Positions 39,363 to 52,729 of a DNA stretch of 64,000 nt are shown in pieces. The notes under the pieces were generated by a model that was not told the DNA's origin, searched no databases, and was given only the letters and a program-made list of their open reading frames with translations. Origin of the DNA: Leidyana gryllorum EB-2025a (taxonomy: Eukaryota; Protista; Apicomplexa); assembly GCA_048772705.1 (NCBI GenBank), contig JBLWGC010000205.1, positions 103,656-167,655 of the forward strand, written 5' to 3'. Both the position numbers and the translations under genes were made by a program. Within the stretch, counting starts at the first letter, position 1. Each line of letters begins with the position of its first letter.

Positions 39363-40819
39363 TCAGGAAGAATATTGGTTCAGGAAGGCAATGTGGAATT
39401 GACGGAAACGCTCCAACCCGCTTGTCAATACTTCAATGCTTGGCAGTATGGCCAGACGAATATGATGGGTTCCTGGTCGCTGCCCGAAACCATCTCCGTT
39501 CGATGTGACAAACCCTGTCAGCCAATAATATGTGCCACACACGCACACACACACACTCACCAGTCGCTTCCAGAAGTTCCATGCAATACATCATTTCAAT
39601 GGATTGATTGCGTCGTTTGGCCTCCTCGATAGCAGCCTGCGGGAACTCGATGCGAGGGAAAGCGTACATTGCGCCTAAAATCGGCTGGCATGACACGCCA
39701 GGCAGAGAGTTAAAGAAATCCGCCACAATTATAGCTTTCTCCTTCAACTCCTGGAACGTCTTGGTCCTGCAACACACAAATTTGTCACAATCATCCAACC
39801 ACGGTATATCGATCAGTAGAAACACCCATCATCCCAGCGCAGCTCCGTCATTTCCACACGGGCGTGCCACTGGCGACGCCCCCACACGAACTGAATTGTG
39901 TGCTTACTTTTCTGCCAAATAGCCATCATACGATTCATCCCCGGGGACGGGGGGGTTGGTGATGCAGGCGATAGTAGTTTGGCCAATGGTGTTCGAGCAG
40001 AGATCCACTGAGCGCATTTTTACTATCACAGCGCGGCAATCCTCGGGTATATTCTCCAAATGGCAGAACCCTCCTCTGAAGCCACACTCCCCGTAGAAGC
40101 CTTTGGAGCTGCTGTGGAGACTCGCCAATTGGGTGTGGAGCTGATATTTATGAAGGATTCGTCTGAACGGGTGGAAAGGTTTTTCCTCGTAATAGCAATT
40201 TTCCTGATAGACCTCGTCAGCGATAACAAGAAGGTCTCTCTCTTCAGCGAATTTGAGAACCGCTGCAACCTGTTCCTCAGTCAGGAAGCAGGGAGCAGGG
40301 TTGCCAGGACATATTACGACGAGGGCTTTCACCGTGATACCATTATCCATCGCTCTATCGAAGGCAGTTCTGAGAGTCTCCAAGTTGAGACTCCAATTAT
40401 TGTCCTCGTCCAACTCGTAGCCAACCACTTGGCCTCCCAATTTCGTTATCGCGGCGCTGTACAGGGGGTATTGAGGAATGGGAGTGAGTATGCCGTCGTG
40501 TTGACCTCCTATTAAGCAAGTCAAGAGCGTGTTAATAGCCTCAGACGCTCCATTCGTGATCATGATATTATTGATGTCGGGCCGGACCCCGTCCCGTCGT
40601 TCCAGAAAGTTGGCCAGCTCGCCACGTAGGCCAGCGGCCCCCAGAGACTCCGTGTAGGCACCGGCATTCTTCAAGAAACCGACATACTTTCGGGCTCGTT
40701 GAATACTATCTAGGGCAAAGTGTTTGCGTAATTCATTCTCGTCTGCAGCCAAAAGTTGCGGACAAGCAACCAATGCGATGGTCTGCAAAACAACAGATAT
40801 TATCCTGTGAACGCCCTCG

Positions 40820-40855
<36 letters not shown>

Positions 40856-45484: not shown

Positions 45485-47558
45485 TCATAATACGTCTTGT
45501 AATGAGTCTCGATACCGAGTCAACATTGCCCAATACATTTCCTGATAAAGGCAACCGAAAATGAACGCGGAACGCAGCATATAAAGGGGAGGAATGCACC
45601 CCTCAAGCACCAATGTCCACAATTTCACCCCGTCACGACACCAAAAGAGTGTCAGTCAACTCACCCCGCCCATATCATTCATATGCTTCTCAACCTCAGC
45701 TTCAGTGGTACACGTAATCATTTTCCACGACTTGAACACCCGATCTTTGATCGAGCCTTCCCAAACCAATTTACAATGTTTGTCAAGACTCAATGTTTGG
45801 TCTTCGTCGTCCTCGTCGTCACCGTTGATGTCGTCGGGACTCCATTTTATTCTTCGCAACATTAATGCTTTATACTTTTTGATTGCTCGAGGACCCCCTG
45901 CGAGCGAGAGATAGACGAACATCAGGTACAGCAGGTCGCGAGCTCACCTTCAATGGCCACCATGTTCCCGACCCCCGGACAGAGGACGCAGACTCCGGTG
46001 ACATGGAGTTGTTTGGCATTCGTGTGGATCTGCAAGGGAGCTTGTCGGAGAAAGACAAAGAGAGAGAGAGAGAGAGAGTCACCTTATATAACTGTTTGGT
46101 GTCTGTGACATTCTTTAGCGCAAATACGGCACATTGCACCGCCACATTGGTTTCGTCCTTTTGCATCCACTTCGCTGCGACCTTTTCCGCTCTTCGCTCC
46201 TTGGACAATTTCTTGCTGGCGTTGCGAGCTTCGTGGGTGGCCAAGCGGTCTCGAACTTGCTTTCGCACTTTCTGCTCCGTGGCAGTGGGCCCGGCAACCG
46301 CCTCCTCGCCCAACACCCGCATGAGGTTCGACAGTTTGGTTTTCGGAGGGTCAGGCGGAATCAGACCCATCCGTATTTTATCTTGTTTCTCCTGCTCGCG
46401 GATCTTCCGCTTCCGTCGACGCATCTTTTTCCGCTCCCTCTCAGTCAGATAGATAACAGCCGCCGTCTGCGTCAAGTCCTTCTCGGCAATGGGCTCGATG
46501 GGCACTGGATGCTCCACCAAATGCGTTATTTGCTTCTCCACTATCCGATAGGGGAAAGTATCATCAGACACATCGGGAGGCGGAACCAGGACCACACTTC
46601 CGCTGATCTCTCCTTCACAAGGCGCCGGCTGGGCTTCAGACCAACCCGTCCCTCTCTCACCCTTCTTCCGAGCTTTGGCTGCCTTTCTTGCCGCGATCTC
46701 GGCTGCAGGCAACCGCTCCACCAGTGCAATATCCCAAGACTCGAGTTCAGGAAATGCGTCTTGACGCTTTCTCTGGAGGGGAACCATTTGACGATTGTGG
46801 ACCACAGGCTCGCGCCGGTCTTCGGGACCCTCGGCAGCATCCGCCGCATCACGCGCAACAGCACTCAGGAATATCCCCTGGGCGTTCCGTCCACCCTTAC
46901 CCGACCAGCCTTCGCTGCGACGCAAGAAATGGTCAGCTGCAGCTCGGGCCTTGATCGTACTGTCGTCTATCACTGGCAGAGCACCAGCGGCGCCACTCAA
47001 CTTGAGGCTGTCGATTCCGCCCTTTCCATTGTTGGCCTTCCGCTCGAGATTCTGTTGACGACGCAGATAGAAACCAGACTCAACAAAGCGTAACCCTTGC
47101 TTCTTGAGCTGAATATAAAAGTACAAGTCAGACAGAACACGTCATTCAAACACTCTCACCTTGTTGCCTCCACTCTTCAGCGAAGGATCGAACCAAGGAT
47201 TCTGAGCGGGGTCACTGAACGCCTTGAGGTTGATCTTGCTGACTTTATACACTTGCTTTATCTTGGCCTCTTTCTCAAGGTTCTTGTTGATCTTCAGTGT
47301 GGCATATTTCGGCCTGAAACCATCCAAAAGACTGCTGGCACCGCCCGCCGGACGCTGGGGGGGCGCCGCTGACGAAAAGCGGGAATTTGCCAGCGCCTCA
47401 CGAGCTGCAGCTGCCCGTGCTAGAACGGCTTCCTTATTGAAGGCCAGTGGAACGGCACTGGGAGCTCCCGCAGTCGCGGTTTGTGGTTGTGCGGCCGGAA
47501 CTTCCCCCCATCGCGTCCTACGCTTTTTGGGCTCGGGTTCGCGGCTCTCGCCTTCCAT
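45485..47558 (-). CDS. PRPF3: U4/U6 snRNP protein PRP3, multi-exon
   Basis: ITHLVEHPVPI, YLTERERKKMRRRKR..EKQDKIRMGLIPPDPPKTKLSNLMRVLG, GPRAIKKYKALMLRRIKW and CKLVWEG. Confidence 0.95.
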
Positions 47559-47894
47559 AGTGTGCGAAAAAAAGTGGTCTACTGGTGTGGGTCGATGTGG
47601 GTGTCAAGTGGTGTGGACCTCAAGTGAGCCCCTTGCCCCGACGTTGGCTTTTGGGACTGTTCTGCAATAGTCACATTGGCTGCCCGTTTGTGGTATGGGC
47701 AGCCCCAATCTTGACAGCACACACGTGTGTATGTAGCATCTTGGAGCCGGTTTTGTTGGTTTTGATGCGCTGTGTCCGTCGGCCGAGTTTGTTTCGTGTT
47801 GAGTGATGCTGGCATTGCCAAGCGGTGGTTGATTGACTGATTAGCTGGAGATGTGAGTGGTGAGCTTTTGTTGGTCGTGTTTTTTGGGTGTCCT

Positions 47895-49445
47895 ATGTCA
47901 ATCGAAACGATCGGAAAGGCGGGTTTGTTCCTGATCGAGTTGCTGGTGTTGTTAGTATGTGTGGCTCTCGGAGCCCGTATAGGTGGGTTGGCGATCGGAT
48001 TCTATGGAGGACTGGGTATGGCCCTCTATTGTTTCTTCTTCCAAATGGATGCGGGAATGATTCCGTACGATGTGATGATGATCATTATGGCGTGCGTTAG
48101 CGCTGTTGGTGCGATGCAGGCTGCTGGTGGATTGGACTATGCAGTATATTTATGTGAGAGGTTACTTCGTTCACGTCCCAGTTGGATAATATTTCTGGCG
48201 CCTTTGACGACTTTCTTGCTTACAGTGTTGGCGGGAACTGGGCACACGACTTACAGTGCTCTGCCGGTGATAATAGAAGTGTCCAAGGACAGCGGTATCA
48301 AGCCGTGTCGGCCGTTGTCGATAGCGGTTGTAGCTAGTCAGCTGGCGATTTGCGCAAGTCCAATAAGCGCGGCAATAACATGGTTGGATGAGTCTGTGAA
48401 GAGCGAAGAGCAGTACGATTTTGGATATCTTCATTTACTGGGAGTGCTGATTCCCTCTTGTTTCATCGCCACATTCATTGGAGCAGTGGTGGTGAATTTG
48501 CGCAAAGGAAAGTATCTGTACGACGATCCTGTGTTTATCAAACGGTTAGCTCGAGGGGATTGCAAGATGCGTACGACTCTTCCAGACGAGACGATAGAGA
48601 AGGTTCGAGCTTTACGGTTAGAAATGGCCGAAGCCTCAAGAGCGAAGCGCAATGACGATAGGCTGACGCCATATCAATTGATGGTCAATAGCGCCAATGC
48701 TGACGGGGATGGCGCTTCTGCGGTTGGAGTCGAAGATAATCTGTCTTTCCTGATGCTCCCATCCGCGCTGGGTGCAAATCGCTCCGTTATACTGCCGGGT
48801 GCCCGACGAAGTTGTTTGATCTTCTTGCTGGGAGTGGGCTGCATAGTGGGATACTCTATATGCATAAGCCCTACCGTGGTACCCAGATGGCGGTCGGAAG
48901 ACAAGCATATCCGCAGCTCAGACGCCGTAGTTGTCATATTCCTTACGGTGGCAGCTCTGATCATCCATTTCACTCACATTGATCCCGCCTCCATCACCCT
49001 CACTTCAACTTTCCGTTCGGGCCTCAATGGCTGTGTTTGCGTACTCGGTGTCGCCTGGATGGGCAATACTTTTGTCACGAATCAATTAGACCACATACGC
49101 AGCATTTCTGGAAACTTATTCGAAGTCGCGTCATGGCTCTTCCCTCTGATTGCCTTTGTGGCCGCTATCTTACTCTACAGTCAGGCGTCTACTCTCATGG
49201 CATTATGGCCGCTTGCGTTCGATCTCCACGTCAACGGACTCACTATGGTGGCCTCGGTGCCCGCCACCGGTGCTCTTTTCATTCTGCCCACCTATCCCAC
49301 ACTTCTCACGGCCGCGGAGATGGACGACACTGGATCTACCAAACTTGGCCGATACGTCTTTGATCATTCTTTCATTCTTCCCGGACTCCTCTCAATCGTT
49401 CTCGCGGTTGTACTCGCTTATGGATTCGGGGCCATCATACTGTGA
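47895..49445 (+). CDS. Anaerobic C4-dicarboxylate transporter, DcuA/DcuB family (bacterial type), intronless, 516 aa
   Basis: LGARIGGLAIGFYGGLG, AMQAAGGLDY, LAGTGHTTYSALPVI, PCRPLSIAVVASQLAICASPISAA, VLGVAWMGNTF, LLYSQAST, LFILPTYPT..AAEMDDTGSTKLGRYVFDHSF. Confidence 0.93.
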   Translation: MSIETIGKAGLFLIELLVLLVCVALGARIGGLAIGFYGGLGMALYCFFFQMDAGMIPYDVMMIIMACVSAVGAMQAAGGLDYAVYLCERLLRSRPSWIIFLAPLTTFLLTVLAGTGHTTYSALPVIIEVSKDSGIKPCRPLSIAVVASQLAICASPISAAITWLDESVKSEEQYDFGYLHLLGVLIPSCFIATFIGAVVVNLRKGKYLYDDPVFIKRLARGDCKMRTTLPDETIEKVRALRLEMAEASRAKRNDDRLTPYQLMVNSANADGDGASAVGVEDNLSFLMLPSALGANRSVILPGARRSCLIFLLGVGCIVGYSICISPTVVPRWRSEDKHIRSSDAVVVIFLTVAALIIHFTHIDPASITLTSTFRSGLNGCVCVLGVAWMGNTFVTNQLDHIRSISGNLFEVASWLFPLIAFVAAILLYSQASTLMALWPLAFDLHVNGLTMVASVPATGALFILPTYPTLLTAAEMDDTGSTKLGRYVFDHSFILPGLLSIVLAVVLAYGFGAIIL

Positions 49446-49787: not shown

Positions 49788-51741
49788 CTACCCATCCATG
49801 GCATACTCGTGGTGGTCATCCTCTGGCGGGTTGGGAGGGGGCACTGACGGGCTTTGCAGAGGTAATTGCCATCGGCTTAGTGTTCTGCAATGGTTGCTGG
49901 TGAACTGGCGTCTCATCCAGTCGGATTTAAAGTCGATCAGTCCGATATTGAATGGCGTTCGGCCTTTGACGGAGTATCCTGTGGGGTCTGTCGCTGCCAA
50001 TACTTGGTGGTACCAGTTGTTGAATGTGTGGGATCGGAGTGCGTCTCGCTCCCATCCCTCGCTAACGGCCGAGTCCCTCTTGTGCATGAGACAGATGAGT
50101 GCGGAGAAGGACTGCCAATAGAGTTCGAGTCTGTCATAGTGCTGTATTTCGGCGGCGTAGAGCTCGAAGAGGCTCTCAACACCGATTCTTGAGAATATCT
50201 GGCGGAGTGTTTCGTCCCGATAGTCCCCGCTGACCATCTCCAATATAACCTGAGACCAAAACGGCTGATAGCACTGAACCCCTCCAACACACAACCTGAT
50301 TGGTCGGTCCGTCCGTCTCCGCACAGCGTCGAGTATCAAATACCAGTAAATAATCAATTCAGAACTACTCAGATAATCTGGAATGGCTAAGTGCTGTACT
50401 CTGTACGTCTCCAGGACATCGAGGATAAATACCGCGACCCTATGGGCCTCGGTATCGTCTTCGTCCAATTCCCCTACCCATTCTGCCACAACTTGACACC
50501 CATCTGACACTCGTAGCGGAGGCAAATCGTCCTCCAATTGCTCTTCGTCGTAGTTGAGCTCAATCTCCACTCTCCGGGCGATCTCCAACCGTCGATTGAG
50601 GGTCCGAGACTCTTCACGTAACCTGTCCAATGTCACACGCTGGATGTGTTTGGTGAGCATCGGCCCTCTGTTCGACCTTGCCTCGTCGACGGCGGCCCCC
50701 TGTTTCTTTCTCACGGCCTCTGGGTGGATTGGAATGGCCCAAATACCCTCAGGGGTATCTTCTAACCCGTCCATTGGCACCACACATTCGGTGGAGGACA
50801 CACAAATGGGTTCGGTGACGTCCCATAAGGCCCGATGCAGGGTCGACTCTCTGTTCTTCATGTGACGCCAGTAGTTTGTGAACCCGTTGTACACGCCGTC
50901 AGCCTCTCTAAGCAACGGGATGTCGAAATAGTGCCAAAACTCACTTGGGATCTCCCGGCCATCGCGGCCTTTCACCGTCCGTTTCCGGGATGTCATGAAT
51001 AAACCACACATGCATCCCATCAATCTCATACTCGGCCTCGGGACGGATGACGGTGATTCCGGGTTGCTGCTCAGCGGACAGAGTCTCTCCTGCGTCGCTG
51101 TTAGTGATTAAAGGCTCACTCCCTGGCACCGCGGGCGAGTTGGTGATCGGTTGATACCCTCTGGGATACTGCGTGTCAATGATGACATGCGAATGAGATG
51201 TCTTCAAAAGATCTCGAATCCGTGACTCCCGACTGTTCAATATATCACACTTCAAGTACGGCAAACTGTCCCGATGGATTGCCAGAGTCCGCATCCTTTC
51301 GGCCTCGACAGTCACCGGGGCGGTAAGGGAACCGCGAACATAGAGATAACGAAGATTGGGAAATGTCAACACTGCTCGATCGTGACTGGTCTCCGTGGCA
51401 CATAGTGTCAGGTTTTGCACACTCGCCGATCCAATAGACGAAAAGGCTTCTGCGACCTCCCAACAAGAGTCTCCATAGATTGTCAAAGTGGTGACATTCC
51501 TCCCAAGATACTTCAAACCAGCGCGACCCCCCTTCTCTACGATGTCAATTCCCTGAACAAATTCTTCCCACACCACGTCATCAAACCATGCATGGGCTCT
51601 CTCAAGATAATTCCCAACCCACTGCCTACACCGACGTGATACCATACCTAAGCAGACCAGGTCTTTCAGTGATAGAAACTGGAATAGAGTTGGTGCAAAC
51701 ATTCGGATCGAACGCCCGTATAAGAAGTCATTTAACTTCAT
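49788..51741 (-). CDS. F-box/LRR-like protein (638 aa, one intron), divergent paralog of the tandem-array genes
   Basis: F-box-like PTLFQFLSLKDLVCLGMVSRRCRQWV. The 37-nt GTGAGT..TTAG intron at 50944-50908 joins ORFs 50941..51753 and 49788..51029 in frame. Motifs are shared with the array proteins. Confidence 0.75.
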
Positions 51742-52096
51742 CCTCAAATTCAAACTATAAAGTGCACGTGATGAAGACTAAATCGATCCGTCGTGCGCTC
51801 ACAACTCAGTTGCTGTCGAATTACCAAAAGCGTACAGCCTCTCCGTCCGACACCACTACACTCGAATTTCCTGCCTCAGATCGAGCCACACTCATATGAC
51901 CCCAGACCAGCTGCATGTTAACTTAAAACACGAGTTCCAACATGCCCAAAAAATTGGGTCTGGTCACCCAAACCACAGCCACCTTGGTTCGAAAGCCAGA
52001 TAGCCGACACACGTGTCTCCATCTGCACACACCCCTTCATTATGCACTCCGGAAGAAGGCCGTTGAAATGCTGGAAAAAATACTCATCAATCCATT

Positions 52097-52729
52097 ATGA
52101 CGGAGGCTAATAAGTTGTGCATCTTCGAACGCCTGCGCAAGGGCGAACTCATATCGCCTGAGGATCCAGACGAGCACTTGCTGCTCGAAGCCTCCTATGC
52201 CACGAGGAAATTGCTGATTCAGATGAACAACGCCCCCGACCCCATCCAAGTGAGACATCTACTGAGTCAAATCACCAACACTGACATCGATCCCACTGTT
52301 AACGTCTTCACCCCCTTACACATCAATTATGGGAAGAATATAAAACTTGGGAAAAATGTTTTCATTAACTTCAACTGCACAATGCTGGATCTCGGCGGCA
52401 TCACCGTTGAAGACGACGTACTCATAGGACCTAATGTCAGCATACTGTCGGAAGGACACCCGATTTCCTTGCAAGACCGCCACGCACTCGCCACTGGAGC
52501 TATTCTAATAAAAAGACATGCCTGGATCGGCGCAGGAGCCGTCATAATGAAAGGCGTGACCATCGGCGAAAACTCCATTGTCGCCGCAGGCGCCATAGTC
52601 TCAAAAGATGTTCCTAGCAACACCATCGTTGGTGGCATTCCTGCCAGAACTCTTAGGGATATCGATGTGCCTGCTGCTAAGACTACGGCTCAAGTCCTCA
52701 GTGGTGGCGATTTAGACAAGCACTCTTGA
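52097..52729 (+). CDS. Sugar O-acetyltransferase (maltose/galactoside acetyltransferase-like, hexapeptide repeat), bacterial type, intronless
   Basis: PLHINYGKNIKLGKNVFINFNCTMLDLGGITVEDDVLIGPNV..GHP and AWIGAGAVIMKGVTIGENSIVAAGAIVSKDVPSNTIVGGIPAR. Confidence 0.93.
   Translation: MTEANKLCIFERLRKGELISPEDPDEHLLLEASYATRKLLIQMNNAPDPIQVRHLLSQITNTDIDPTVNVFTPLHINYGKNIKLGKNVFINFNCTMLDLGGITVEDDVLIGPNVSILSEGHPISLQDRHALATGAILIKRHAWIGAGAVIMKGVTIGENSIVAAGAIVSKDVPSNTIVGGIPARTLRDIDVPAAKTTAQVLSGGDLDKHS

Follow-up and report, generated by a model that had tools for sequence, protein, structure and literature searches.

How does a gene for a carrier of the Dcu family of anaerobic C4-dicarboxylate transporters, a family regarded as bacterial, come to lie among spliced genes on a eukaryotic chromosome, and what might it do there? 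The question is raised by a stretch of 64,000 nucleotides from the apicomplexan Leidyana gryllorum EB-2025a (hereafter the window; 103.7-167.7 kb of contig JBLWGC010000205.1, or C205, in a genome assembly of 15.5 Mb and 237 contigs that was also searched as a whole), in which an intronless gene encodes a protein that resembles bacterial DcuA and DcuB. We consider it quite probable that this is a gene for a working DcuA-type exchanger of C4-dicarboxylates and aspartate, which was acquired from a bacterium by an ancestor of at least some eugregarines, those of insect guts, was domesticated there, gained an insertion in its central loop, is now represented by four paralogs, and has a role in the exchange of aspartate or malate for succinate.

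The Dcu gene and its chromosomal setting

The open reading frame (ORF) that contains the gene (47853-49445, plus strand) is free of internal stops, and translation from its first ATG, at 47895, gives a protein of 516 residues. This protein matches PF03605 (DcuA_DcuB) with 384 bits against a cut-off of 27 (E=7e-115). The match is split into two segments, at profile positions 1-210 and about 224-367, which take in both halves of the profile, and the protein also exceeds the curated thresholds of three Dcu models in NCBIfam, including TIGR00770 (463 bits against 331) and NF006927 (487 bits against 369). The match to the family is far beyond chance. When the protein was aligned with 65 bacterial homologs, 26 of the 27 near-invariant columns (those at least 90% identical in the homologs) were found to be retained, the sole change being M to F, and the motifs AGTGH, SPISAA, GVAWMG, YSQAST, LPTYPT, and DDTGST were also kept. 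The retention of the near-invariant residues argues for a conserved transport core. A preliminary description of this DNA, made from the sequence alone, had reported an intronless 516-residue gene with Dcu motifs, and the uninterrupted frame, the profile matches, and the alignment all agree with it. Its label of a DcuA/DcuB antiporter stands as far as the family is concerned, while the DcuB part does not, because the tree described below places the gene as DcuA-type.

The genes on both sides are eukaryotic in structure (Table 1). On the upstream side lies a divergent gene for the pre-mRNA processing factor PRP3, whose ATG is at 47558 on the minus strand. Exon-wise tblastn with gregarine and Toxoplasma PRP3 sequences recovered introns of about 50 nt with GT...AG ends and frame changes between the exons, so that the intron-rich PRP3 of the preliminary description, with its ATG 336 nt from that of the Dcu gene, was found as stated. 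On the downstream side, where a convergent spliced F-box gene had been proposed, the convergent ORF pair is present, with 342 nt between its stop codon and that of the Dcu gene; the F-box assignment itself is weak, at 18.1 bits against a cut-off of 20.5. The spacer between the two divergent start codons presumably holds the promoters of both PRP3 and the Dcu gene. The GC content is flat, between 0.50 and 0.53, over the Dcu gene and its flanks. Integration is thus seen at the level of the assembly: the contig exceeds 167 kb, and on it the Dcu gene lies between the spliced PRP3 upstream and the F-box-like gene downstream.

The host itself is, judged by its genes, an alveolate, because a six-frame search of the genome gave at least 16 matches to the alveolin/IMCp family, and alveolins are an alveolate marker. 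When the single largest exon of the window PRP3 was used as the query, the exons being left unjoined, the closest named relative was that of the gregarine Blabericola migrator (44%), followed by those of Toxoplasma, Porospora, Cystoisospora, Cardiosporidium, and Cyclospora.

Relatives of the Dcu protein

A word-index search with the window protein was dominated by DcuA proteins of Enterobacterales (Pantoea, Erwinia, Mangrovibacter, and Pectobacterium), which are about 50% identical to it in the conserved parts, and no bacterial protein exceeded about 50% identity. In an exhaustive search of representative sequences, which gave 1594 matches at E<=1e-3, the first match was a 522-residue protein from a Gregarina sp. 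Poly transcript in EukProt, which aligned end to end with the window protein at 43%. A profile made from the eukaryote-type sequences added a sequence of Protomagalhaensia sp. Gyna, also from EukProt, and another Logan contig. Both species are gregarines of cockroaches, and their transcriptomes were prepared from trophozoites picked by hand (Salomaki et al. 2021, PMC8051059). The preliminary description had held that orthologs spread broadly and vertically across alveolates would speak against a transfer. Such a spread was not seen: among the matches listed (the top 120-150 of the exhaustive search of representatives and of the search with the profile, which covered EukProt), the eukaryotic ones were gregarine or gregarine-like only, although these searches do not prove absence elsewhere.

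Homologs of the gregarine type were also found on three metagenomic contigs, two of which have informative neighbours. The homolog P0002 adjoins an alveolin gene (PF12314, E=2e-15), and the homolog P0122, on contig L013, adjoins a PRP3 gene that is 49% identical to the window PRP3 in the core domain. The order of this pair differs, being tail-to-tail on L013 (4830-8243) and head-to-head in the window (45488-49445), which would imply a small local rearrangement between the two species. With about four Dcu copies and an assumed several thousand genes, we roughly estimate that adjacency to PRP3 would arise by chance in about one case in a thousand, and the linkage of the Dcu gene to PRP3 is therefore probably ancestral. 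Synteny was not found beyond PRP3: none of the four paralogs has near it a counterpart of the WD40 or alveolin genes that adjoin the metagenomic homologs.

The top match of the word-index search was a 512-residue protein (P0001; L009:8001-9539, GCA_946226865.1) labelled as Serratia entomophila, and it was considered whether this sequence came from a mislabelled eukaryote or shared the insertion. Both were ruled out, by its classic aspA-dcuA-cutA-dsbD context and by the nature of its extra length. P0001 is E. coli-like except for an in-frame tandem duplication of about 79 residues (TIFAGTGN...LPSTF is repeated), to which its top score is due, and this duplication could be real or an assembly artefact. 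Among the other contexts, a 27.9-kb contig (L014, GCA_037975565.1) carries split aspartase fragments, a Dcu gene of 518 residues, a transposase of the insertion-sequence type, and, at its end, a gene resembling animal haem peroxidases; this contig may be a chimera of symbiont or host DNA, or may come from an animal assembly with inserted bacterial DNA.

Phylogeny and base composition

For the phylogeny, a maximum-likelihood (ML) tree was calculated from 50 rows and 440 columns under LG+C20+F+G4 with posterior mean site frequencies (PMSF), and support is given here as ultrafast bootstrap (UFBoot)/Shimodaira-Hasegawa-like approximate likelihood ratio test (SH-aLRT) values. The eight eukaryotic sequences, namely the three alignable paralogs of this genome, three metagenomic homologs, and two gregarine transcripts, formed one clade (94/99), and this clade lay inside a 34-row DcuA-type group (98/90) whose members include E. 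coli DcuA, sequences of Erwiniaceae and other Enterobacterales, a Desulfogranum DcuA clade, and the clade of P0123, which is Campylobacterota-like. In contrast, E. coli DcuB was separated from the eukaryotic clade by branches with support of 100/99-100. Within the eukaryotic clade, the window copy was sister to the paralog on contig C230 (90/70), and the Gregarina and Protomagalhaensia sequences formed a separate subclade (100/100). When the fourth paralog, from contig C51, was added and all nine sequences were forced together, the likelihood was better by 14 log-likelihood units than that of a free quick search (p = 0.69 in the approximately unbiased, AU, test). The ML phylogeny that the preliminary description had proposed as a check thus gave a gregarine clade nested in bacterial DcuA, and together with the spliced flanking genes, the conserved residues, and the predicted fold it bears out the earlier proposal of a horizontal transfer domesticated in a eukaryotic chromosome.

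The GC content at third codon positions (GC3) of the homologs tracks that of their own eukaryotic neighbours. It is 0.55 for the window gene (neighbours 0.54-0.64), and on two other contigs it is 0.44 (neighbours 0.41 and 0.43) and 0.77 (neighbours 0.66 and 0.69), so that the gene appears to have drifted with the base composition of each host. For the window itself, base composition and codon usage were discarded as evidence of foreign origin, because the GC content of the host is near that of enterobacteria and the comparison is uninformative (correlations of relative synonymous codon usage of 0.34 against 0.20).

The central-loop insertion and the predicted structure

The preliminary description had noted a hydrophilic insertion of about 70 residues in the central loop, and the alignment with the bacterial homologs confirms it at a measured length of 63 residues. 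In all nine eukaryotic-type Dcu sequences, an insertion is found at one common site in this loop, after the conserved DDPxFxxRLxxG segment. These insertions are hydrophilic and range from about 60 to 150 residues among the gregarine-type proteins, and several of them begin with a weak G-x-C...LP pattern. Topology work places the central loop of E. coli DcuA in the cytoplasm, and the many Lys and Arg residues in the insertion of the window protein are consistent with a position on the cytosolic side. The inserted loop is probably exposed to the cytosol and probably has a role in regulation or sorting. Two long bacterial homologs, P0123 (576 residues) and P0125 (488 residues), were examined as possible sources of the insertion and were ruled out, because their insertions are in a different loop. 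That of P0123 (L011:6001-7731, an ENA scaffold) is about 130 residues long. The contig of P0123 is bacterial, with a fused rpoBC, S12/S7/EF-G, and IF2 as neighbours, and this protein is probably from Campylobacterota. From the different position of its insertion, large loop insertions appear to have arisen independently within the Dcu family.

An AlphaFold 2 model of the window protein, made with an alignment of 73 sequences, had a mean predicted local distance difference test (pLDDT) score of 91.5 and a predicted template modelling (pTM) score of 0.90. In this model, residues 231-253 of the insertion form a confidently predicted helix, while low confidence is confined to residues from about 260 to 300, and the remainder of the insertion after the helix is probably flexible. 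A Foldseek search with the model retrieved members of the elevator-type ion-transporter superfamily (INDY/NaDC/NaS1, Pho90, TRAP SiaQM, ArsB, and AbgT YdaH/MtrF) with template modelling (TM) scores of 0.4-0.56 and a probability of 1.0. A sequence search of solved structures with the window protein gave no match, and it has been stated that no Dcu structure has been solved (PMC10634366). In the alignment, the N-termini of the four Dcu copies of this genome do not extend beyond those of the bacterial proteins, which makes a mitochondrial presequence unlikely and the plasma membrane, reached via the secretory pathway, the most likely location.

Paralogs, metabolic setting, and proposed role

The genome contains four Dcu-family loci on four contigs (C205, the contig of the window, C230, C208, and C51), and each of them is a single uninterrupted frame of about 505-522 residues. 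The paralogs are 33-50% identical to one another, except that the C51 copy has only about 23% identity to anything else. About 380 nt upstream of this C51 copy (C51:204754-205995), and on the same strand, lies the only match in the genome to the large-conductance mechanosensitive channel MscL (C51:204093-204374, plus strand, 103 bits).

That the eight eukaryotic sequences form one clade and that the insertions occupy a common site makes one transfer with later duplication the simplest reading of these sequences. They point to an old transfer from a bacterium to gregarines that was followed by duplication, and not to contamination or to a recent single event.

In bacteria, DcuA is an antiporter of L-aspartate against succinate (or fumarate), and DcuB of malate against succinate (Cho et al. 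2023, PMC10634366). Gut eugregarines lack complexes III-V and are apparently adapted to hypoxia (Salomaki et al. 2021, PMC8051059), and the same study reported that rquA is absent from apicomplexans, gut eugregarines included. The preliminary description had proposed that the genome be searched for enzymes that could work together with the carrier, and six-frame family searches gave a divided answer. A soluble fumarate reductase of the flavocytochrome-c type was found (620 residues, TIGR01813 317 bits against a cut-off of 285), which is encoded by an intronless gene (G000:C194:53242-54636, plus strand; L018:1303-3165) and is a candidate source of succinate. In contrast, there was only one full PF00206 (Lyase_1) gene, a class II fumarase by its scores (653 bits for the fumC model against 427 for the aspA model), and no second one that could be an aspartase. 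A spliced SdhA, an aminotransferase of the AspC/TyrB type, and malate dehydrogenase were also found. The aminotransferase, malate dehydrogenase, fumarase, and soluble fumarate reductase fit an exchange of aspartate or malate for succinate, and by analogy with the bacterial carriers the protein most likely takes up aspartate or malate and releases succinate in return.

From these results a course of events can be proposed. An ancestor of at least the eugregarines of insect guts would have taken the gene from a bacterium, and it would then have become a normal nuclear gene, have gained its hydrophilic loop insertion of about 60-150 residues, and have been duplicated to give the four paralogs of this genome. 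The protein would reach the plasma membrane by the secretory route and might act as an elevator-type antiporter that lets succinate out and brings L-aspartate, malate, or fumarate in, either from the lumen of the gut or through the membrane of an organelle. Aspartate could be converted into succinate by the aminotransferase, malate dehydrogenase, class II fumarase, and soluble fumarate reductase, and this route might re-oxidise NADH in a lineage that is reported to be without complexes III-V. A bolder version, which we put forward tentatively and think rather doubtful as a whole, is that, of the four paralogs, each with a regulatory or sorting loop, some work at the plasma membrane and others at the reduced mitochondrion, together providing the import of aspartate or malate and the export of succinate in a fumarate-reducing redox pathway that replaces complexes III-V, and that they constitute the first eukaryotic branch of the Dcu family.

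Alternative explanations

Several points weigh against the proposal of an acquired and still functioning DcuA-type exchanger. The bacterial sister group of the eukaryotic clade is a polytomy, so that no donor can be named, and the UFBoot value of 94 for this clade is just under the usual threshold of 95. The placement of the PRP3-linked P0122 in the tree deviates from simple positional orthology, although a tree with the window copy and P0122 as sisters was not rejected by the AU test (p=0.26). The linkage of the gene to its flanks is that given by the assembly. Aspartase, the usual partner of bacterial DcuA, was not found in the six-frame PF00206 search of the genome, and the aspA-dcuA pairing, which is typical of the DcuA subtype and not strictly defining for it, does not occur here. 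Furthermore, there is no Dcu structure or map of the binding site against which the residues could be checked, and the substrate, direction, and membrane location proposed here are taken from bacterial relatives at about 50% identity.

Three alternatives concern the origin of the gene. A Dcu ORF of a gut bacterium could have been misjoined to gregarine DNA, by contamination or by chimeric assembly. The closest non-eukaryotic relatives are indeed DcuA proteins of insect-associated Enterobacterales, and the junctions are, as noted above, assembled ones; however, such an error would have to have been repeated on four large contigs for four paralogs, all of them uninterrupted frames, and it would leave unexplained the spliced genes within about 340 nt on both sides, the flat GC content at the junctions, the limit of about 50% identity to any bacterial protein, the eukaryote-only clade with a common insertion, and the homologs that adjoin alveolin and PRP3 genes in independent assemblies. 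We regard this explanation as barely credible. It is also improbable, if somewhat less so, that the gene is an ancient eukaryotic inheritance, which goes back to an early eukaryote or to an endosymbiont (that of the mitochondrion or of the plastid) and which nearly all other eukaryotes have lost. The deep paralogs and the base composition adapted in each host show that the gene is old in gregarines, as such an inheritance would require, but the eukaryotic clade nests among DcuA proteins of Enterobacterales and of bacteria that resemble Desulfobacterota and Campylobacterota, its nearest relatives include no named sequence from alphaproteobacteria or cyanobacteria (most bacterial rows of the tree being unnamed), and only gregarine-type eukaryotes appeared among the matches listed. 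Alternatively, separate transfers from different bacteria could account for the four paralogs, or for the two subclades of gregarine sequences. The C51 copy falls outside the eukaryotic clade in free tree searches and, lying directly behind a bacterial-type mscL, could be part of a separate co-transferred block, and no copy in this genome belongs to the Gregarina/Protomagalhaensia subclade. The monophyly of the eight sequences, the improved likelihood when all nine are forced together, and the insertions at the same loop position in nine of nine cases, which in the long bacterial homologs are elsewhere, nevertheless leave several transfers with a small probability.

The remaining alternative accepts a real and laterally acquired gene and supposes that its function has shifted, for instance to another anion, to uniport or export only, to an organelle membrane (that of a mitochondrion-related organelle), or to a "transceptor" role of the loop. 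Subfunctionalisation is suggested by four deeply divergent paralogs, and the eukaryote-only insertion with its confidently predicted helix and the absence of aspartase also speak for a shift, as does the fact that E. coli DcuB doubles as a co-sensor of DcuS. On the other hand, the window copy retains nearly all of the near-invariant bacterial residues, no N-terminal targeting extension is present, and the enzymes of a succinate-making pathway are encoded. We therefore think a shifted function unlikely, though it deserves to be taken more seriously than any of the alternative origins, and we favour a DcuA-type exchanger with its transport function conserved.

Other features of the window

Two further ORFs lie near the gene. 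An intronless ORF for 210 residues at 52097-52729 (plus strand), 2.6 kb downstream of the Dcu gene with the F-box-like gene in between, is of the maltose/galactoside O-acetyltransferase (hexapeptide) type and is a second bacterial-looking gene in this neighbourhood; its best NCBIfam models score 110-112 bits, which is under the equivalog cut-offs. On the upstream side, at a distance of about 7 kb, an ORF at 39907-40848 (minus strand) encodes a generic class I/II pyridoxal phosphate-dependent aminotransferase, for which the best models are of the alanine/tyrosine type (about 90-98 bits).

Table 1. Features of the Dcu locus, in positions of the window
Feature	Position	Strand	Basis
DcuA-type coding sequence (Dcu anaerobic C4-dicarboxylate transporter family), 516 aa + stop, intronless	47895..49445	+	ORF, PF03605, TIGR00770, NF006927, AlphaFold 2 model
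Eukaryote-specific insertion in central loop, aa 227-289, 63 aa	48573..48761	+	Columns filled in <10% of 65 bacterial rows
PRP3 (pre-mRNA processing factor), flanking host gene, at least 3 short GT-AG introns	45488..47558	-	PF08572 E=4e-46, exon-wise tblastn
336-nt spacer between the divergent PRP3 and Dcu start codons	47559..47894	.	Sequence and ORF coordinates
F-box-like gene, flanking host gene convergent with Dcu, ORF pair	49788..51753	-	ORFs; F-box match of 18.1 bits, below cut-off

Comparison with known systems

Full-text literature searches found no report that ties Dcu or other dicarboxylate carriers to gregarines, Apicomplexa, Blastocystis, or lateral gene transfer into eukaryotes, and the Dcu gene is not mentioned in the gregarine transcriptome paper (PMC8051059). 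If the proposal made here is correct, a carrier family regarded as bacterial is extended into eukaryotes, and gregarines are the first eukaryotic lineage for it. Gregarines are early-branching and poorly studied relatives of Cryptosporidium and the malaria parasites, and the carrier would add a testable transport step to the sketchy picture of their redox balance and of their exchange of metabolites with the insect gut. The lineage-specific loop insertion could also show how a bacterial membrane protein was adapted to eukaryotic sorting or regulation, and the soluble fumarate reductase may merit a phylogenetic look of its own for a bacterial origin.

The nearest known system is DcuA of E. coli (b4138), together with the DcuA proteins of Erwiniaceae and other Enterobacterales. 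The window protein shares with them its Pfam and TIGR families, its position on the DcuA side of the tree, and the motifs, at about 50% identity outside the insertion. It differs from E. coli DcuA in its eukaryotic host, in the 63-residue central-loop insertion, in having four diverged paralogs, and in its neighbours, which are spliced eukaryotic genes instead of an aspA partner or an operon. E. coli DcuB (b4123), a malate/fumarate:succinate antiporter, is alike in family and predicted fold and differs in being set apart from the gregarine clade by strongly supported branches. As a physiological model, the most suitable carrier is DcuA(As) (Asuc_0142) of the rumen anaerobe Actinobacillus succinogenes, which takes aspartate in and lets succinate out during fumarate reduction (PMC10634366). 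In that bacterium, however, the carrier feeds a membrane-bound fumarate respiration by way of aspartase, whereas the gregarine has a soluble fumarate reductase and no aspartase was found in its genome, so that aspartate would have to enter the pathway by transamination. The best structural matches of the model (DASS/INDY, TRAP-M, ArsB, and AbgT) support a predicted elevator-type mechanism with two re-entrant hairpins, although they belong to other families and share only 11-15% sequence identity.

A bacterial transporter in an anaerobic gut protist is to be expected more than it is surprising; the general pattern is familiar, and comparable captures of bacterial genes are known from Blastocystis and Entamoeba. 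For eugregarines themselves, the closest parallel is the ADP-forming acetyl-CoA synthetase (PMC8051059), in which a bacterial gene was likewise captured by a eukaryote of the low-oxygen gut and was inherited vertically thereafter.

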